Shown here piece after piece: positions 43,672-55,480 of a DNA stretch of 64,000 bases. Source of the stretch: Pseudomonas aeruginosa PAO1 (lineage in GTDB: Bacteria > Pseudomonadota > Gammaproteobacteria > Pseudomonadales > Pseudomonadaceae); the NCBI RefSeq assembly GCF_000006765.1, contig NC_002516.2. The stretch is one strand, 5' to 3'. A program made the position numbers and the translations under genes. The notes beneath the pieces were generated by a model that was given only the letters and a program-made list of their open reading frames with translations, was not told the DNA's origin and ran no database searches. How positions within the stretch are numbered: the first letter of the stretch is position 1; each line of letters starts with the position of its first letter.

Positions 43672-44280
43672 TCAGCGCAGGTACTCGCCGCTGCCGGCCA
43701 GGCTTTGCCCCCAGAGCTCGATGAAGATGAAGGCGGTGGTCAGCAGGGTCAGGAAGCCGACGCCGAGGATGCAGAAGGCGTAGAACAATGTCTGCCGCTC
43801 CTGCATGCGCATGAACAGCGGCAGGCCGGTGAACAGCAGGCGTACCGAGTAGGCGCAGGCAGCCGCCGCGGCCAGCAGCAGGAGGATCCGCCAGGGCACC
43901 AGGGCGACGATCCCGGCGAGCATCAAGGGCACGGCGATCGCCGTGGTGAAGGTCAGGCTGCCCGGTACGCTGGGGCGCGACGGCGTGCGGAACAGCACCC
44001 AGCGTACGAATAAGCCCATGATCACCACGCCGGCGACGAAGCCCAGGTAACACATCGTCGCCAGCAGCAGGGCGCTGCCGCTGGAGAGGTGTTGCACGCT
44101 GTCGTTGCCCGGCAGCGACCAGCCGACCTGGGTAGTGCCGATGAACAGGCAGGCCGCCGGCAGCAGCGGCAATAGCAACAGCGGAACGAGGAAGGCGAAA
44201 GGGTGATGGTCGTAGTCCTGGCGCAGACGAGGCCAGGCATTGGAGGGACTGATCAGTAGCCGAGCCATTTCGCGGGTCAT
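43672..44280 (-). CDS. Yip1 family membrane protein, 202 aa
   Basis: LLISPSNAW, five hydrophobic helices, YSVRLLFTGLPLFM; AGAGGTG RBS. Confidence 0.8.
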   Translation of the reverse strand: MTREMARLLISPSNAWPRLRQDYDHHPFAFLVPLLLLPLLPAACLFIGTTQVGWSLPGNDSVQHLSSGSALLLATMCYLGFVAGVVIMGLFVRWVLFRTPSRPSVPGSLTFTTAIAVPLMLAGIVALVPWRILLLLAAAAACAYSVRLLFTGLPLFMRMQERQTLFYAFCILGVGFLTLLTTAFIFIELWGQSLAGSGEYLR

Positions 44281-44440
44281 GACGGGCACCTCTTTTCTGT
44301 GGCGTTCAGGAGTCTGGACCGGCCCGGCGCGAGGGGGTTCAGGTGGCGTGCCGGGCGGTCCGCGACCGCCCATCCAGGGCCTTGAACCGGAAGACGCGGG
44401 GAGCGCCGAAAGACAAACGTCCCTGTCTTCCGGAGGAGCC

Positions 44441-44671
44441 ATGACCACCTACGAAATCCAGCACATGCGCGGCTGGCGGCGTTTCGCCCGCACCGTGCGC
44501 GCCGCCAGCCGGGCCGAGGCGGAACGCCTGTGCCTGCCCTGGGAGTGGGTGGATGACGAGGTCCTCGCGGTGATTCCGGCCGAGGCCGAGGTGGCCGAGC
44601 GCTGGCAGCGCCTGAACGAGGATCTGGTGGGGAGCCTGGAAGGCCTGGAGCGCCTCAGGCGGAACGAGTGA
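44441..44671 (+). CDS. Hypothetical protein, 76 aa
   Basis: GGAGGAGCC-ATG; MTTYEIQHMRGWRRFARTVRAASRAEAE...; 17-nt convergent overlap with the methyltransferase. Confidence 0.6.
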   Translation: MTTYEIQHMRGWRRFARTVRAASRAEAERLCLPWEWVDDEVLAVIPAEAEVAERWQRLNEDLVGSLEGLERLRRNE

Positions 44672-45605
44672 CCCGCAGGCCGACCACGGCGATCCGCTCG
44701 GCTTCGCGGTAGGCGGGGCTGTCCAACTCTTCGGCGAACACGTCCGGGTCCAGTTCCTGGTAGTCCCAGTCCCACTCCCGAGACGCCAGGCGTTCGCGGA
44801 TGCGGGCGAGGAACGGATCGCCGCCTTCGACCATCGCCACGCCGGTATACAGCAGCAGGCTGCCGCCGGCTTCCAGGCGCTCGAGGGCGGCATCGACGAT
44901 TGCCAGCGAGAGCCCGGCGCCGAGCATCCCGCCACCATGCCGGTAGGCGCGCTCCGAGGCATCCAGGAGATAGGGCGGGTTGGCCACGATCAGGTCGAAG
45001 CGACCGGGCGCCTGGCTCAGCAGGTCGCTACGCGCCAGGGTCAGGTTACCGACCCCCGCCAGCGCCGCGTTGACCCGCGCCAGGTCGAGCGCTGCCGGAT
45101 TGATATCCAGCCCGTGTACTTCGGCGTCCGGGCAGGCCATGGCGATGCGGATCGCGCCGGGGCCGGCGCCGCAGCCGATATCCGCCGCACGGCGGATGCG
45201 TGCCGGATCGGACGATGCCAGGTGGCTGCGGATCAGCCGGTCGAAGCGGTAGGTGTCGGGGCCGAAGAACACCGCGTCGGCGGCCAGGGTAGGGAAGGCC
45301 GAATGGACGAACAGTTGCTCGCCGAGGCTGGAGACGCGCACCTGGCTGCGCCAGCCGTCCGCCTCGCGGCGGATCAGGTCGGCGCCGGCAAGAAGGGTCA
45401 GCCAGTCGGCCGGCAGGCTTTCCCCGGCGAATGCCCGGCTCCAGCCGAAGATGCCGGCCAGGTCCCGGGCCATGCGGTTTTCCGGGCGGGCGTTGACGCG
45501 CTCATGGGTAGCCGGGGTGACGGTGACGAAACGGTAGTCCTGGCCTCGCAACCAGTTGCCGAGGCTGACCAGGACGTCCAGGCGCGGATCATTCAGGCTG
45601 GGCAT
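44655..45605 (-). CDS. Class I SAM-dependent methyltransferase, HemK/NPPY type, 316 aa
   Basis: ADIGCGAGPG motif I, GLDIN, DLIVANPPY motif IV, VFFGPDTYRF. Confidence 0.9.
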   Translation of the reverse strand: MPSLNDPRLDVLVSLGNWLRGQDYRFVTVTPATHERVNARPENRMARDLAGIFGWSRAFAGESLPADWLTLLAGADLIRREADGWRSQVRVSSLGEQLFVHSAFPTLAADAVFFGPDTYRFDRLIRSHLASSDPARIRRAADIGCGAGPGAIRIAMACPDAEVHGLDINPAALDLARVNAALAGVGNLTLARSDLLSQAPGRFDLIVANPPYLLDASERAYRHGGGMLGAGLSLAIVDAALERLEAGGSLLLYTGVAMVEGGDPFLARIRERLASREWDWDYQELDPDVFAEELDSPAYREAERIAVVGLRVTRSA

Positions 45606-46965
45606 GGGCGGCCCTCCAGCGCTGGCTGAACATCCGCGTGGCAAGGAGACCGGCGGGTCCGTGGTGGCGGTGCGGGGCCATCAGTTCGAGAAGGCGTGCG
45701 ACGCCCTGCTCGGGGGATAGCCGCAGCAGCTCGCGCCGCAGCGCGACCTGCTCGGCATCCACGTCTCCGCCCGCCGTCGCCGGCTCCGCCAGCGGCGCAA
45801 GCGGGTCCCTGTCCGCCGGAGCGGGGGCTTGCCAGTCGCCAGCGATCCAGTCGTACAGCAACTGCTGCTCGTAGGGAGTGAAGACTCCGAACATTGCCGC
45901 CCGGTCGCCCTCGATCAGGTTCCAGAAGCGGCTGCCGCGCGGATCGGCATGGCGCCGGATCCAGCCCTCTTCCTCCAGGCAGGCGAGAAACGCCGGGAAC
46001 CGCCCGGGCACCGCCAGCCACTGGTTCACCGTGCGCCCGCCGATCCGGCAACGATCCGAATGCATACCGGCGGCGTAGGGGCGCTTGCGCTCGAACATGG
46101 CCAGCAATTCTTCCTCGAGATCGAAGCCGTCGATTACCTGCGTAGTGCTCAGGCCGACCTCGTTCAGGCGGTAGCCGTTCCTCACCCGTTCGAGGAAGGC
46201 CGCGCGCCCGCCAAGCTGCGGCAGGTTGTCGTAGAGCGCGCGCAGGGCCTTGCGCGCATGCCCGCTGGCGGCGTTGTCGATGGTCACGTGCAACTGGAAG
46301 TAGTAGGGGTCGAAGCCCAGCTCGCGCAGCTCCTGAGTGGTGATCAACAGGTGCAGCGGCGGTTGCTCGTAGCCGAGGTTGTAGCCGATCACTTCGGGCA
46401 GGTAGTCCGCGGCGAGGTGGCCGAGGGCGAGTTGCTGGGTGCCCTGCAGGTAGTGGAGATCGCTGAGGCCTTCGACTTCCTCGCTGCCGATGCTGGCCAG
46501 CAGGCGCCGGTAGAGCAGGACGTGGTTGCGTGCCGGGACGCCGTCGCCGAGTTCTTCGAGGAAGGTCTCCAGCAGCGGCCGCAGGCGTTCCTCGCCATGA
46601 TGCGGCAACAGCCCATAGAGCCAGGCGCCGTCGACCAGCTTGGTCGGGGCCACGCTGCGAATGAAGTGCATCGCCTGGGAGGGAACCTGGAAGTAGCGTG
46701 GCCCTTCGCCGCGCCGACGTGCCCGGAGGTATTCGGCATGCGCCTCGGCGGTGCGCCGGGCACCGGCATCGAGCCAGGCCGGCCAATCGGCGGGGTCCTC
46801 CGGCAGGTCGTCGTCATGGGTGGCGGCCAGGCTCAATTGCTGGTCGAGGAACTCGCCGGCGGCTTCGAGGTGCTCGCGGGGCTCGTCGAGCAGGGCGTGG
46901 TACAGGTCGCGGACCCTGGGCGAAGGGCTTGCACTGGAGGCAGGGAGGGGCGAAGACAGGCTCAT
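45589..46965 (-). CDS. Iron-containing redox enzyme (heme-oxygenase-like diiron oxidase), 458 aa
   Basis: FLEELGDG...NHVLLY, GYNLGYEQ, YFQLHVTIDNAASGH ligand pattern; AAGGA RBS. Confidence 0.85.
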   Translation of the reverse strand: MSLSSPLPASSASPSPRVRDLYHALLDEPREHLEAAGEFLDQQLSLAATHDDDLPEDPADWPAWLDAGARRTAEAHAEYLRARRRGEGPRYFQVPSQAMHFIRSVAPTKLVDGAWLYGLLPHHGEERLRPLLETFLEELGDGVPARNHVLLYRRLLASIGSEEVEGLSDLHYLQGTQQLALGHLAADYLPEVIGYNLGYEQPPLHLLITTQELRELGFDPYYFQLHVTIDNAASGHARKALRALYDNLPQLGGRAAFLERVRNGYRLNEVGLSTTQVIDGFDLEEELLAMFERKRPYAAGMHSDRCRIGGRTVNQWLAVPGRFPAFLACLEEEGWIRRHADPRGSRFWNLIEGDRAAMFGVFTPYEQQLLYDWIAGDWQAPAPADRDPLAPLAEPATAGGDVDAEQVALRRELLRLSPEQGVARLLELMAPHRHHGPAGLLATRMFSQRWRAAHAQPE

Positions 46966-47150
46966 GTCGCGTTCCTTGTCGTGGGTTTGCGGGGGCGGCC
47001 GGGGCGACCACACATATGGGTGCGAGTGACACCAGGGGAAAAAGGTTTCACTGGCAGGATCGGCGGCGCGCCGGGGAACCTCACGGCGGAAAAAACGAAC
47101 CTCGACGGCACTCCGGCGTCTTCCCGAGACAATCCCCGGGAGCTGCGCCG

Positions 47151-48284
47151 ATGACCCACGACCTGGCCGCCAGCGGCCTTCGCTTCGGCATCGAGGAAGA
47201 ATTCTTCCTGCTCGATGCCTCCGACCTGGACATCGTCCGCTCCGCCCCCGCCGGATTCGTCGCGGCCTGCCGTGACACGCTCGGCGAGCATTTCGCCGAG
47301 GAGATGTTCGAATGCCAGGTCGAGGTGGCCAGCCCGGTGTTCTCCACCCTGGCCGAGGCCGCGCGCTTCCACGGTCAGGCCCGGCAACGCCTGGCGCATC
47401 TGGCCATGGACTTCGGCCTGCGCTCGCTCTGCGTCGGCACCCATCCCTTCGCCGACTGGCGGCGGGCGCGAAGCAACCCGGCGGCGCACTTCGCCCGCCT
47501 GTTCGAGGACCAGGGGCGGGTGGCCCGGCGCAGCCTGGTCTGCGGCCTGCACGTGCATGTGGAGATACCGCCGAGCCACGACCGCATGGCTGTGCTCCAG
47601 CGCGTGTTGCCGTGGCTGCCGCTGCTGCTGGCGTTGAGCGCATCCTCGCCGTTCCGCGGCGGCCGGCGCAGCGGCCTGGCGAGCTATCGACGGGCACTCT
47701 GCGGCGAGTGGCCGAGGATGAACATTCCTCCTGCCTTGCCCGACGAGGACGCCTATCGCCGCCACCTGGCGCTGCTGCGCGAGACCGGCTGCATCCGCGA
47801 GGATGGCCAGGTCTGGTGGATGATCCGGCCGTCATCCCATGTGCCGACCCTGGAGCTGCGTATCTGCGACGCCTGCCCGCGCCTGGCCGACGCGCTGAGC
47901 CTGGCCGGGCTGTTCAGGGCGCTGGTGGGCGAAGCGCTGGGCGCGGACCCGCGTGCGTTGCCGGTCGCGCGCGACGCCTGCCTGGAGGAAAACTACTGGC
48001 AGGCGCTGCGTTACGGTTGCGCCGGCCGCTATCTCGTCGAAGGCCGCTGCGTAGGTGCCGGGGACTGGCTGGAAATGGCCTGGCGACAGTGCCGGCCGCA
48101 GGCCCGCCAGGGCAACGAATGGGCCTACCAGCATGCCTGCGGGTTACTCGAAGAGACCTCCGCCGCCCGCCAGTTGCGGCGTTACCGGAGGTTGCGCGAA
48201 GCGGGCCAGGAGCGCCATCCGGCACTGCGCCGGCTGGTGGAGGAGCTGCTGGAGGAAAATCTCCAGCCGGCCTTGGCCGGCTAG
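47151..48284 (+). CDS. YbdK-type carboxylate-amine ligase (GCS2 family), 377 aa
   Basis: FGIEEEFFL, EMFECQVEV, CGLHVHVE, LSASSPF, WWMIRPS..PTLELRICD. Confidence 0.92.
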   Translation: MTHDLAASGLRFGIEEEFFLLDASDLDIVRSAPAGFVAACRDTLGEHFAEEMFECQVEVASPVFSTLAEAARFHGQARQRLAHLAMDFGLRSLCVGTHPFADWRRARSNPAAHFARLFEDQGRVARRSLVCGLHVHVEIPPSHDRMAVLQRVLPWLPLLLALSASSPFRGGRRSGLASYRRALCGEWPRMNIPPALPDEDAYRRHLALLRETGCIREDGQVWWMIRPSSHVPTLELRICDACPRLADALSLAGLFRALVGEALGADPRALPVARDACLEENYWQALRYGCAGRYLVEGRCVGAGDWLEMAWRQCRPQARQGNEWAYQHACGLLEETSAARQLRRYRRLREAGQERHPALRRLVEELLEENLQPALAG

Positions 48285-48285
48285 C

Positions 48286-48375
48286 GCGCCGTTCATCATT
48301 CCCTTCATCCTCGGCTACACCGCCTGCAGCTACTACGTATTTCGCGGCAAGAGCGCCGATGCCGGCTATCACTGA
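48286..48375 (+). pseudogene. 3' remnant of cytochrome bd oxidase subunit II (cydB/cioB-like)
   Basis: APFIIPFILGYTACSYYVFRGKSADAGYH*, no start codon, begins right after the ligase stop; matches the CydB/CioB C-terminal motif from memory. Confidence 0.75.
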
Positions 48376-48385
48376 GCCGGGCCGC

Positions 48386-48655
48386 TCAGGAACAGGCGCG
48401 CCCGATCCGCGGCGTACGGCGGGCACCGGCGAGGAGCAGGGCGAACTCGTCGTGAAGGACTTCGCTCATCCGGCGTACCGCCTCGTCATTGGCCAGGAGA
48501 TCGAGGGCGACTCCTGGAATGGTGATGTTTTCTTGCGGATTGACATGGCTGCTGAATTGCAAGGTGACTTCATGGGTATCGCTGATGGAAACCAGGCAGT
48601 CGTAGCCAGCCAGGTAATTTCGGAAACTGTTGGCAATCATGCGGGGCGTAGTCAT
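48386..48655 (-). CDS. DUF1652-like small protein, 89 aa
   Basis: GGAG RBS; YDCLVSISDTHEVTLQF...LHDEF. Confidence 0.65.
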   Translation of the reverse strand: MTTPRMIANSFRNYLAGYDCLVSISDTHEVTLQFSSHVNPQENITIPGVALDLLANDEAVRRMSEVLHDEFALLLAGARRTPRIGRACS

Positions 48656-48948
48656 GGCTGATACTCCAGGGTGGATCGTTACTCTGACCTTAGCCGCGAC
48701 GATACCGGCGAGCGAAACATGCAACGATGGACGGGCGCCTCTTCCAGGCAGGCGAAACGAAACGGCAAAGGCCTCGCTTTCTCCATCGCGAACCGACGAT
48801 TTCGACGGAATTGCCGAAACGCGGGTGAGGCCAGGAAATCTTCTTTCCAAGGAGACGCGCCTACGGACACGCGAGACCCTCGTCGCTCCTCGAACCACCG
48901 GCTTGCTGCGCCCGATGGCGGCTTTCGTCGCCCTCGAAGCGCGCCGGC

Positions 48949-54343: not shown

Positions 54344-55480
54344 TCAGACCTTACGTTGGAAAAAGTCGAGCGCCTCCTGGAAGCTGGGCCGCAGCGGCAC
54401 GTTCCAGTCGGGATGGGCGGTGAAGTGATAGCCGTTGCCCTTGATGCACTCGACCAGCAAGGAAAAGCTCTTCCGATCCGCCACCACGCAGACCTCGTCG
54501 AAGCGAACGGACTCTTCTCCGACCCGATGCTCCATGGCCCGGGGAAGGTAGAAGGTGGCCGGGAAGTTGTCACCCATATGGGAGCCTGGGTTGCCCGCAT
54601 CGTCGCTGTGGTGAAACATCTCCCTGTGCTCCCCCCGGCCCAGGCAGTCATTGAGGGCGTCCACCAGTTGCCGCGTGCGCGGAGTGATGTTTCCCCTGGC
54701 CATATCCTCCCTGCCATAGAATCCGTCCTCGCTCAGGGGATCCTTTGCACCGAGGGGGGTGTATCTGACCGCGGTATTCCTTCTTGCATCGAGACCACCA
54801 CTGCCATGCGCCTCGATCGAGGGCGCTACCAGGAAGAGGTCATAATCGGCGGTCATCGCCAGCCCGCAAGCCGGGCTGGCCAGTACCTGCACCGCTTCCG
54901 ACCGCCCCAGGCGGCTGATCCTGTAGAGACCGTCCGGCTCCTGGCGGGCTTCGAACTCATAGCGTTTGCCGCTGGGGCCCTGCGCGGTCAGGAGGCGAAC
55001 CGGCCCGACACCGTCTGCCACCAGGCCGAAATTCCGCACCAGCTCCGCAAGGCGTTGCCGAGAGATGCGCAGGTCGGTCTGGGTATAGGCTCCGCCATCC
55101 ATTCCCTTCGCCACAGCCAGGTTCAGCTTGCGTATTTCCGCCGTGTCGCGGTCTTCCCGCTTGCTGAGATGCTGGTCGACACAGATGAACCCCGCCTGCG
55201 GACCCCAGTTCGAGCTTTTCCCCTTCACCGAGAAGCCCTTGGTCGGGAAACCCTCTTCGATCAGCGTGGTGACGATTCTTTCAACCGGGCGAATGCCAAA
55301 GACGGTATTCGTCTGCCTGGCCACCGCCTGCATGCGCAAGGCATGTTCGACGGGAACCCCCACCCCCTGCGCATCGAACAGGTCCTGTAGAGCCCGTGCC
55401 TGCATATCCGCAGGGCGCAGTAGCGGTCCGGGCTGTGCCGTTGCGTTAGAAACCACCTGACGATGACCGTCGATACGCAT
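54344..55480 (-). CDS. exoY: T3SS effector nucleotidyl cyclase ExoY, intact, 378 aa
   Basis: MRIDGHRQVVSN start, GFPTKGFSVKGKSS ATP-binding loop, TADYDLF metal-binding motif. Confidence 0.97.
   Translation of the reverse strand: MRIDGHRQVVSNATAQPGPLLRPADMQARALQDLFDAQGVGVPVEHALRMQAVARQTNTVFGIRPVERIVTTLIEEGFPTKGFSVKGKSSNWGPQAGFICVDQHLSKREDRDTAEIRKLNLAVAKGMDGGAYTQTDLRISRQRLAELVRNFGLVADGVGPVRLLTAQGPSGKRYEFEARQEPDGLYRISRLGRSEAVQVLASPACGLAMTADYDLFLVAPSIEAHGSGGLDARRNTAVRYTPLGAKDPLSEDGFYGREDMARGNITPRTRQLVDALNDCLGRGEHREMFHHSDDAGNPGSHMGDNFPATFYLPRAMEHRVGEESVRFDEVCVVADRKSFSLLVECIKGNGYHFTAHPDWNVPLRPSFQEALDFFQRKV

Follow-up and report, generated by a model that had tools for sequence, protein, structure and literature searches.

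What do three adjacent genes in the PA2134-92 stress island of Pseudomonas aeruginosa do, and do they do it together? In the stretch of the PAO1 chromosome analyzed here (64,000 nucleotides of NC_002516.2, hereafter the window), they encode what is predicted to be a diiron oxidase of the heme-oxygenase-like type (HDO), an N-methyltransferase (MT), and a YbdK-family carboxylate-amine ligase. A first-pass annotation of the window had named these families and proposed that the trio makes or modifies an N-methylated, oxidized gamma-glutamyl metabolite or peptide, such as a stress protectant or toxin. Our analysis shows that the HDO is a full-length homolog of DtpC, a desiccation tolerance protein of Acinetobacter. 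HDO and MT form a conserved core, to which the ligase is a dedicated accessory. We tentatively favor the view, to which we give a probability of about 0.45, that the genes form a stress-induced small-molecule pathway built around a DtpC-type diiron oxidase and yielding a protective N-methylated, amide-linked, oxidized metabolite. The genes are arranged as follows.

44655–45605, minus strand: MT, 316 amino acids, read from the open reading frame; PA2179 by gene order.
45589–46965, minus strand: HDO of the DtpC family, 458 amino acids; PA2180 by gene order.
46966–47150, no strand: divergent intergenic region of 185 bp with two promoter-like elements inside.
47151–48284, plus strand: YbdK-family carboxylate-amine ligase, 377 amino acids; PA2181 by gene order.

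The PA numbers were deduced from gene order, with anchor genes around the trio, rather than looked up directly. These anchors are a hybrid PAS sensor kinase (PA2177; PMC3372973), a DUF892 gene (PA2184), the Mn catalase gene katN, a Zn alcohol dehydrogenase gene (PA2188), and an exoY-type gene. The bounds of the open reading frames confirmed the layout first described, in which the 3' end of HDO overlaps the start of MT by 17 nt (45589–45605) and the ligase gene diverges across the 185-bp gap. Profile searches upheld all three family calls.

In a Pfam profile search the HDO matched PF14518 over residues 100–267 with 105.9 bits (cut-off 28.9); NCBIfam has no model for it. Its AlphaFold2 model (pLDDT 86.9) adopts the seven-helix heme-oxygenase-like fold, and 18 of its top 20 Foldseek matches in the PDB are HDOs. 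The closest solved structures (RohS, SznF, HrmI, PolF, and BesC), all of them small-molecule HDOs, are 14–21% identical to it. The predicted tie to these enzymes is one of fold comparison only, as a sequence profile of the HDO family searched against the PDB found no significant relative (best a MarR protein, E = 0.078, and RohS, E = 0.12). Six putative metal ligands on core helices 1–3 (E138, H148, E200, H226, D230, and H236, a 3-His/3-carboxylate set) are invariant in 30 relatives, and all six are retained in nearly all full-length representatives. The core, at about residues 95–300, follows an N-terminal helical part (residues 18–84) and precedes a C-terminal part of ~160 residues. The latter is the extra C-terminal domain suspected in the first-pass annotation; it does exist and is conserved as far as Acinetobacter. 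Neither terminal piece of the HDO, nor the N-terminal domain of MT, gave any Pfam match, even at E = 10. The HDO family is of moderate size, with 940 clusters at 50% identity with E ≤0.001 and 135 with E ≤1e-30. Within P. aeruginosa, proteins identical or 99% identical to the window HDO are encoded on more than 1000 contigs.

Some further features of the family were noted. In profile searches, residues 318–372 of the HDO (window ~45850–46014) faintly resembled three winged-helix proteins of the MarR family (E = 0.078 to 1.4), too weakly to call. Y195, in a GYNLGYE motif, is invariant in the 30 Pseudomonadaceae relatives, and the equivalent residue is Phe in all six distant homologs checked, Acinetobacter DtpC orthologs included. 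Dozens of metagenome proteins of 640–1028 amino acids (P0172, P0201–P0270) contain a DtpC-like HDO domain (35–42% identity) with all six ligands. We considered whether these long homologs are HDO-MT fusions and rejected the idea; Pfam shows PF14518 alone, plus a trypsin domain in one.

The family has one member with a known phenotype. DtpC (ABUW_2437; PMC13232832; bioRxiv 10.1101/2021.08.11.455981), desiccation tolerance protein C of A. baumannii, was described in June 2026 as a protein that guards, in a diiron-dependent way, against the oxidative stress of desiccation. Its gene is co-transcribed with katE, and one of the two is enough for drying survival. DtpC restrains H2O2 build-up and mutagenesis in dried cells and gives no protection against acute H2O2; the substitutions E143A, H153A, and H232A each abolish protection, and an iron chelator rescues the dtpC mutant (PMC13232832). 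For its mechanism the authors offer three options: iron binding, scavenging, and small-molecule synthesis (PMC13232832). An earlier preprint had found ABUW_2437 to be 40% identical to a Pseudomonas stutzeri protein.

We made the comparison with DtpC via orthologs from A. radioresistens and A. terrae/terrestris, which stand in for the A. baumannii sequence. The window HDO is 38% identical to the former (P0155; E = 2e-84) and 36% identical to the latter (P0157/P0272; E = 7e-82), and the alignments span about residues 35–448 of 458, thus taking in the extra C-terminal part. E143, H153, and H232, the essential residues of DtpC, correspond to E138, H148, and H226 of the window HDO, and P0157 bears the exact numbering E143/H153/H232. 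The A. terrae gene is directly upstream of katE and the A. radioresistens copy is close to katE, which matches the published arrangement (PMC13232832). Judged by its sequence, the window HDO is a full-length DtpC homolog. The two share the six putative metal ligands and the C-terminal part, and both have catalase genes nearby in a cluster of general-stress genes. Among the pseudomonad HDOs 107 residues are invariant, and 77–89% of these are retained in distant homologs without MT, Acinetobacter included, which argues for the same chemistry throughout. The immediate contexts differ. The Acinetobacter gene is co-transcribed with katE, with no MT or YbdK gene adjacent, whereas the Pseudomonas HDO gene is translationally coupled to MT and faces the ligase gene. 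The gene downstream of HDO in the window is MT rather than katE, and the nearest catalase gene, that of the Mn catalase KatN, lies ~3 kb away on the other side.

MT matches PF05175 ("MTS") and carries NPPY at residues 209–212. An N-terminal domain (~1–125) is followed by a Rossmann domain, in which the GPD(T)Y (with D117) and NPPY motifs lie; the AlphaFold2 model has a pLDDT of 90. The best full-length Foldseek match is AerE (E = 3e-16, template modeling (TM) score 0.67–0.70 over 370–379 columns) and the second is GenN (E = 2e-15, TM ~0.6), whereas RsmC, METTL5, and PrmC match over the Rossmann part only. AerE is a proteusin peptide N-methyltransferase that methylates the side-chain amides of D-Asn, and its D141 touches the substrate amide and is essential; GenN is the gentamicin 3''-N-methyltransferase. 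The likeness to these enzymes consists of a two-domain architecture over the full length (TM 0.6–0.7), a GPDxY motif with the catalytic Asp (AerE D141, here D117), NPP(Y/F), and a Gly-rich loop after it. In the profile alignment AerE Y137-I-G-P-D141 falls on MT F113-F-G-P-D117, and AerE N231-P-P-F on MT N209-P-P-Y. D117 and N209, the counterparts of two members of the AerE triad Y137/D141/N231, are invariant in the MT family. The position of the third, Phe113 in MT, is Phe in 24 of 24 relatives. MT differs from AerE in this residue, and from both enzymes in an identity of only ~20% and in having no ribosomal peptide or aminoglycoside genes around it. The loop after NPPY (residues 214–224), highly conserved and modeled with low confidence, may serve as a substrate lid.

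Orthology of MT to PrmC, PrmB, and RsmC was examined and rejected, with scores of 69.1 bits against 199.1 (TIGR03534), 54.1 against 229.7 (TIGR03533), and 33.5 against 295 (NF007023), respectively; these models cover the Rossmann core of MT only. The premise of the first-pass annotation, that planar amide or amine nitrogens are what NPPY enzymes methylate, still holds, and MT resembles AerE and GenN rather than being an ortholog of any of these three. A small molecule or peptide is the more likely target, over a release factor or rRNA.

Linkage was assessed in 80 species-level loci with an HDO relative at 46–86% identity, out of at least 590 such stretches. MT directly follows HDO in 73 of them, and one further locus stops at a contig edge. 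Median spacing between the two is 11 nt, and in 66 of 77 loci they overlap or lie ≤30 nt apart. Pseudoduganella, a betaproteobacterium, has the pair as well, and the flanks of the pair vary between genera. HDO and MT thus form one translationally coupled operon, conserved across the Pseudomonadaceae and reaching the Oxalobacteraceae. Failure of the genes to co-occur outside the P. aeruginosa island had been set in advance as grounds for dropping the proposal; they are found together widely. The genes around the pair outside P. aeruginosa encode LigD (31 loci), Mn catalase, DUF892, hemerythrin, SDR, DUF4142, and CinA proteins, and the neighbors of HDO in Acinetobacter include trehalose genes.

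The ligase passes the equivalog model NF010039 (470.8 bits, cut-off 371, residues 2–374) and the model TIGR02050 (383 bits, cut-off 176.4), and matches PF04107 with 310.9 bits. Its closest known counterparts are the YbdK/GCS2 carboxylate-amine ligases, such as E. coli YbdK and EgtA. Gamma-glutamyl activity is assumed from the family name as its only basis. A YbdK gene lies within 10 kb of HDO in 26 of the 80 loci, 24 times divergently upstream and twice on the same strand directly downstream of MT. A rough HDO tree spreads the loci linked to YbdK over several clades, with YbdK-less loci between them. Approached from the ligase, the association tightens greatly: of the YbdK loci in a metagenome scan, all seven at ≥46% identity carried HDO and MT, against none of 72 at ≤39%. 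Five YbdK homologs at 45–49% identity, picked regardless of context (labeled P. chlororaphis, a putida-like metagenome, P. fluorescens, "Pantoea sp.," and a Paucimonas metagenome-assembled genome), all belong to HDO-MT-YbdK operons whose genes are spaced by −8 to +16 nt. The window clade (≥43% identity) is thereby set apart from other YbdK/GCS2 ligases, as homologs at 31–39% show no such tie. This dedicated clade occurs, as far as sampled, only beside the HDO-MT pair. The adjacency counts and the ligase-side linkage together indicate an HDO-MT core with an accessory YbdK clade, so of the trio as first proposed the HDO-MT part holds and the ligase loses its place in the core. HDO-based cassettes and the DtpC phenotype are already known; the coupling of HDO, MT, and YbdK is undescribed in the literature searched.

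The expression of the locus bears on what it is for. Two promoter-like elements were recognized in the intergenic region.

47097–47120, plus strand: extracytoplasmic function (ECF; AlgU-like) promoter-like element upstream of ybdK, GAACCT (47097–47102)-N16-TC (47119–47120), supported by conservation across loci.
47024–47050, minus strand: ECF-type promoter-like element upstream of HDO, consisting of TGAAACCTTT, a spacer, and CTC, conserved in relatives.

The first of these had been reported in the first-pass annotation; it is present and ends at 47120, not at 47123. Its bare form, GAACCT-N16-TC, is no better than chance in the 64-kb window (1 found, 1.08 expected). A motif GAAC-N16–19-GTC/TCAA, defined post hoc from the same data, lies 32–56 nt upstream of ybdK in 25 of 25 divergent loci, compared with 0.54 in shuffles. 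A second GAACCT (47076–47081), 21 nt upstream of the first, is not conserved in P. paraeruginosa. On the HDO side, (T/G)GAA(T/A)yyTT followed after ~13–15 nt by CTC is found upstream of HDO in 59 of 81 loci, among them loci of lineages that lack MT or YbdK. A search of the window for more copies, as would mark a regulon, returned only this one. Both elements resemble the AlgU consensus GAACTT-N16/17-TCTNN (PMC7641640) and are classed here as putative ECF (AlgU-like) promoters. No sigma-70-type promoter was found in 44300–48700.

Published data place the genes in a stress response. In published transcriptomes, oxidative stress shifts PA2178–PA2181 along with the PA2134-92 locus, and a block in lipoprotein transport, which activates AlgU-dependent genes, raises PA2180 8–14-fold. 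The neighboring PA2176 and PA2177 are part of sigma-22's stress stimulon (PMC3372973). The locus is lost convergently in cystic-fibrosis lineages, and natural deletions of PA2161–PA2204 exist. A paper on the Azotobacter AlgU proteome does not mention the HDO, MT, or YbdK proteins.

Our preferred explanation combines these observations into a pathway. The HDO would use O2 at its 3-His/3-carboxylate diiron site to oxidize a small substrate with an amine or amide group, most likely an amino acid derivative. MT, AerE/GenN-like in type, would methylate an amide or amine nitrogen on the same molecule, and the ligase, where present, would join a carboxylate to an amine in an ATP-driven reaction, building or capping the molecule. 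Like DtpC in Acinetobacter, the product would curb iron-dependent oxidative damage when cells dry out, are in stationary phase, or suffer envelope stress. Of the three steps, that of the HDO would be essential, and methylation and ligation would be lineage-specific tailoring. The chemistry is coherent, in that a carboxylate-amine ligase yields the very amide nitrogen that AerE- and HemK-type enzymes methylate, and the nearest HDO folds are those of N-oxygenases. The protectant half of the original proposal fits the DtpC homology, the stress regulon, and the stress-gene neighbors in other species. A wider claim, that DtpC-type HDOs in general start a new pathway to an intracellular protectant against oxidative, iron-driven damage, N-methylated and amide-linked in the pseudomonads, strikes us as doubtful; an example of its product would be an N-oxygenated, N-methylated amide, hydroxamate-like or of gamma-glutamyl type, that scavenges radicals or binds iron.

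Several known systems offer comparisons. In the ergothioneine pathway the GCS2 ligase EgtA partners a methyltransferase and a non-heme iron oxidase in making an antioxidant, which makes it a functional analogy for the module. The window oxidase and MT are unrelated to EgtB and EgtD, however. Gene frequencies for the EgtA comparison come from PMC13674229. The BesA–BesE pathway to beta-ethynylserine combines the HDO BesC with a glutamylation step in a single amino-acid pathway (PMC8341276). It differs in that BesC is a distant structural match of the window HDO (Foldseek E = 0.32), and no halogenase or pyridoxal-phosphate enzyme genes lie at the trio. SznE/SznF, RohS, and HrmI share the heme-oxygenase-like diiron fold with the window HDO and are among its best structural matches. 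In the streptozotocin pathway SznF acts after the methyltransferase SznE. The differences are again considerable: the TM score is ~0.33 to SznF and 0.62, normalized, to RohS, the window HDO has no cupin domain, the helix 3 ligand spacing (H-x3-D-x5-H) sets it apart from the N-oxygenating HDOs, and the window MT, unlike SznE, is an NPPY enzyme (AerE/GenN/HemK-like). The pairings of SznE with SznF and of BesA with BesC, to which the first reading appealed, therefore hold as analogies; at 14–21% identity between the window HDO and solved HDOs, they do not hold as kinship.

A number of observations weigh against the preferred pathway. DtpC protects without adjacent partners, which weakens the claim that all three enzymes contribute to one product; of the original proposal, the enzyme types and their linkage are borne out and this part is not. 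The Acinetobacter loci have no adjacent MT of this kind and no adjacent YbdK, and Halopseudomonas and some other lineages also have no adjacent MT. The HDO can thus work alone and need not supply the substrate of MT or YbdK. That DtpC works without adjacent partners is the main weakness of the pathway; the HDO step may therefore be complete in itself. The ligase, moreover, is absent from 54 of the 80 HDO loci, and no conserved transporter or regulator typical of a biosynthetic cluster was found near the pair in these loci, where general stress genes stand instead. The geometry of the metal site, finally, is predicted from conservation.

The action of DtpC without adjacent partners makes a direct protective role of the HDO a serious rival, although on balance we think it unlikely. 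The HDO would itself be the protective agent, consuming O2-derived species or holding iron in the manner of Dps or rubrerythrin, while MT and the ligase act on it or on other proteins, for instance through N-methylation of amides or ligation of an amide to a side chain, and no small molecule is made. DtpC alone restores drying survival in Acinetobacter, and the HDO stands alone in several lineages. The rescue of the dtpC mutant by an iron chelator, and the inclusion of iron sequestration and scavenging among the authors' options (PMC13232832), point the same way. The tight translational coupling of HDO and MT is also compatible with a protein complex, the targets of NPPY enzymes include peptide side-chain amides (PrmC, AerE), and the weak MarR-like winged-helix signal at residues 318–372 (E = 0.078) could mean a macromolecular partner. 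Set against this, the substrates of all characterized HDOs are either small molecules or the enzyme's own side chains, and there is no scavenger among them (PMC13108848). DtpC is no shield against acute H2O2, two iron atoms per protein would make for poor sequestration, and a dedicated ligase clade is hard to account for if no small molecule is made.

A pathway to a ribosomally synthesized and modified peptide, in which a precursor would be N-methylated on Asn or Gln side chains by the AerE-type MT and oxidized by the HDO, is improbable. AerE, the best structural match of MT, does act on a proteusin peptide, and HDOs have been linked to ribosomal peptide modification in the literature. The window even has a short open reading frame abutting MT (76 amino acids, 44441–44671, plus strand), which is convergent to MT, overlaps its 3' end by 17 nt, and has no family match. 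This frame is restricted to P. aeruginosa and P. paraeruginosa, however, and accounts for 1 of the 80 loci. No small open reading frame that could encode a peptide precursor is conserved beside the pair, the recurrent ones being alternative-frame shadows of HDO and MT. Nor does the locus contain epimerase, protease, or exporter genes, and the Tyr137 of AerE is replaced by Phe throughout the MT family.

A shade less probable again, and already disfavored, is the idea that the three genes have unrelated functions and have come together merely as stress genes accumulate in an island. The mixed stress functions of the surrounding genes and the absence of YbdK from two thirds of HDO loci would suit it. 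What it fails to explain is that HDO and MT remain adjacent, with gaps of ≤30 nt, across genera with differing flanks, and that YbdK joins the pair in two independent arrangements, in a clade never seen elsewhere. Least probable of all is the toxin or antibiotic (an N-nitroso, nitro, or hydroxamate product, as in the SznF and RohS pathways) also raised in the first-pass annotation. The one point in its favor is that the closest solved folds are those of N-oxygenases from antibiotic pathways. These enzymes are only 14–21% identical to the HDO, however, no resistance, export, or further tailoring gene or other supporting gene was found at the locus, the regulon and neighbors are protective, and the sole phenotype known for the HDO family is self-protection (PMC13232832).

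The surroundings of the module yielded further observations. In P. aeruginosa a gene for a Yip1-domain membrane protein (43672–44280, minus strand) lies just beyond it; a Yip1-domain gene also lies beyond the module, in convergent orientation, in two P. fluorescens-group loci (L035, L172) and may recur. About 7 kb from the trio is the exoY-type gene (~54344–55480, minus strand; PF03497, 378 amino acids), whose product belongs to the class of type III secreted adenylate-cyclase effectors. In another P. aeruginosa locus (L090, CM130021.1), a Tn3-family mercury-resistance transposon adjoins the module; ybdK there is without its last 24 codons, with HDO and MT left intact. After the HDO-MT pair, the P. 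fluorescens group has the gene for the non-homologous end-joining ligase LigD (31 loci, L007–L080; for example L049, 12360–14951), another stationary-phase and desiccation repair function. In Pseudoduganella umbonata (L087, 6341–13521) the pair is followed on the same strand by genes for isoaspartyl peptidase, cyanophycinase, and cyanophycin synthetase. Four loci (L080, L011, L040, L069) are labeled Gordonia sp., Verrucomicrobiaceae, Armatimonadota, and Abditibacteriota. Their HDO loci are of Pseudomonas or Paucimonas type, L080 grouping inside the P. fluorescens clade, and the labels are probably due to contamination or mis-binning.

The homology to DtpC lends the HDO family a phenotype, namely diiron-ligand-dependent protection from the oxidative damage linked to drying. 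With it, three "hypothetical" genes of a much-cited island, which is switched on in biofilms, in wounds, and under envelope stress and is repeatedly lost in cystic-fibrosis lineages, gain annotation. The pseudomonad HDO-MT-YbdK module is the first independent evidence favoring the small-molecule option for DtpC, and it sketches the chemistry in a form open to test. To YbdK ligases, the true substrates of which are poorly defined, it lends a physiological setting. If the wider claim on DtpC-type HDOs is true, it would explain the drying-survival phenotype of DtpC in Acinetobacter and give YbdK enzymes their first physiological role. The results also touch a practical problem, namely how P. aeruginosa and Acinetobacter survive on the dry surfaces of hospitals.

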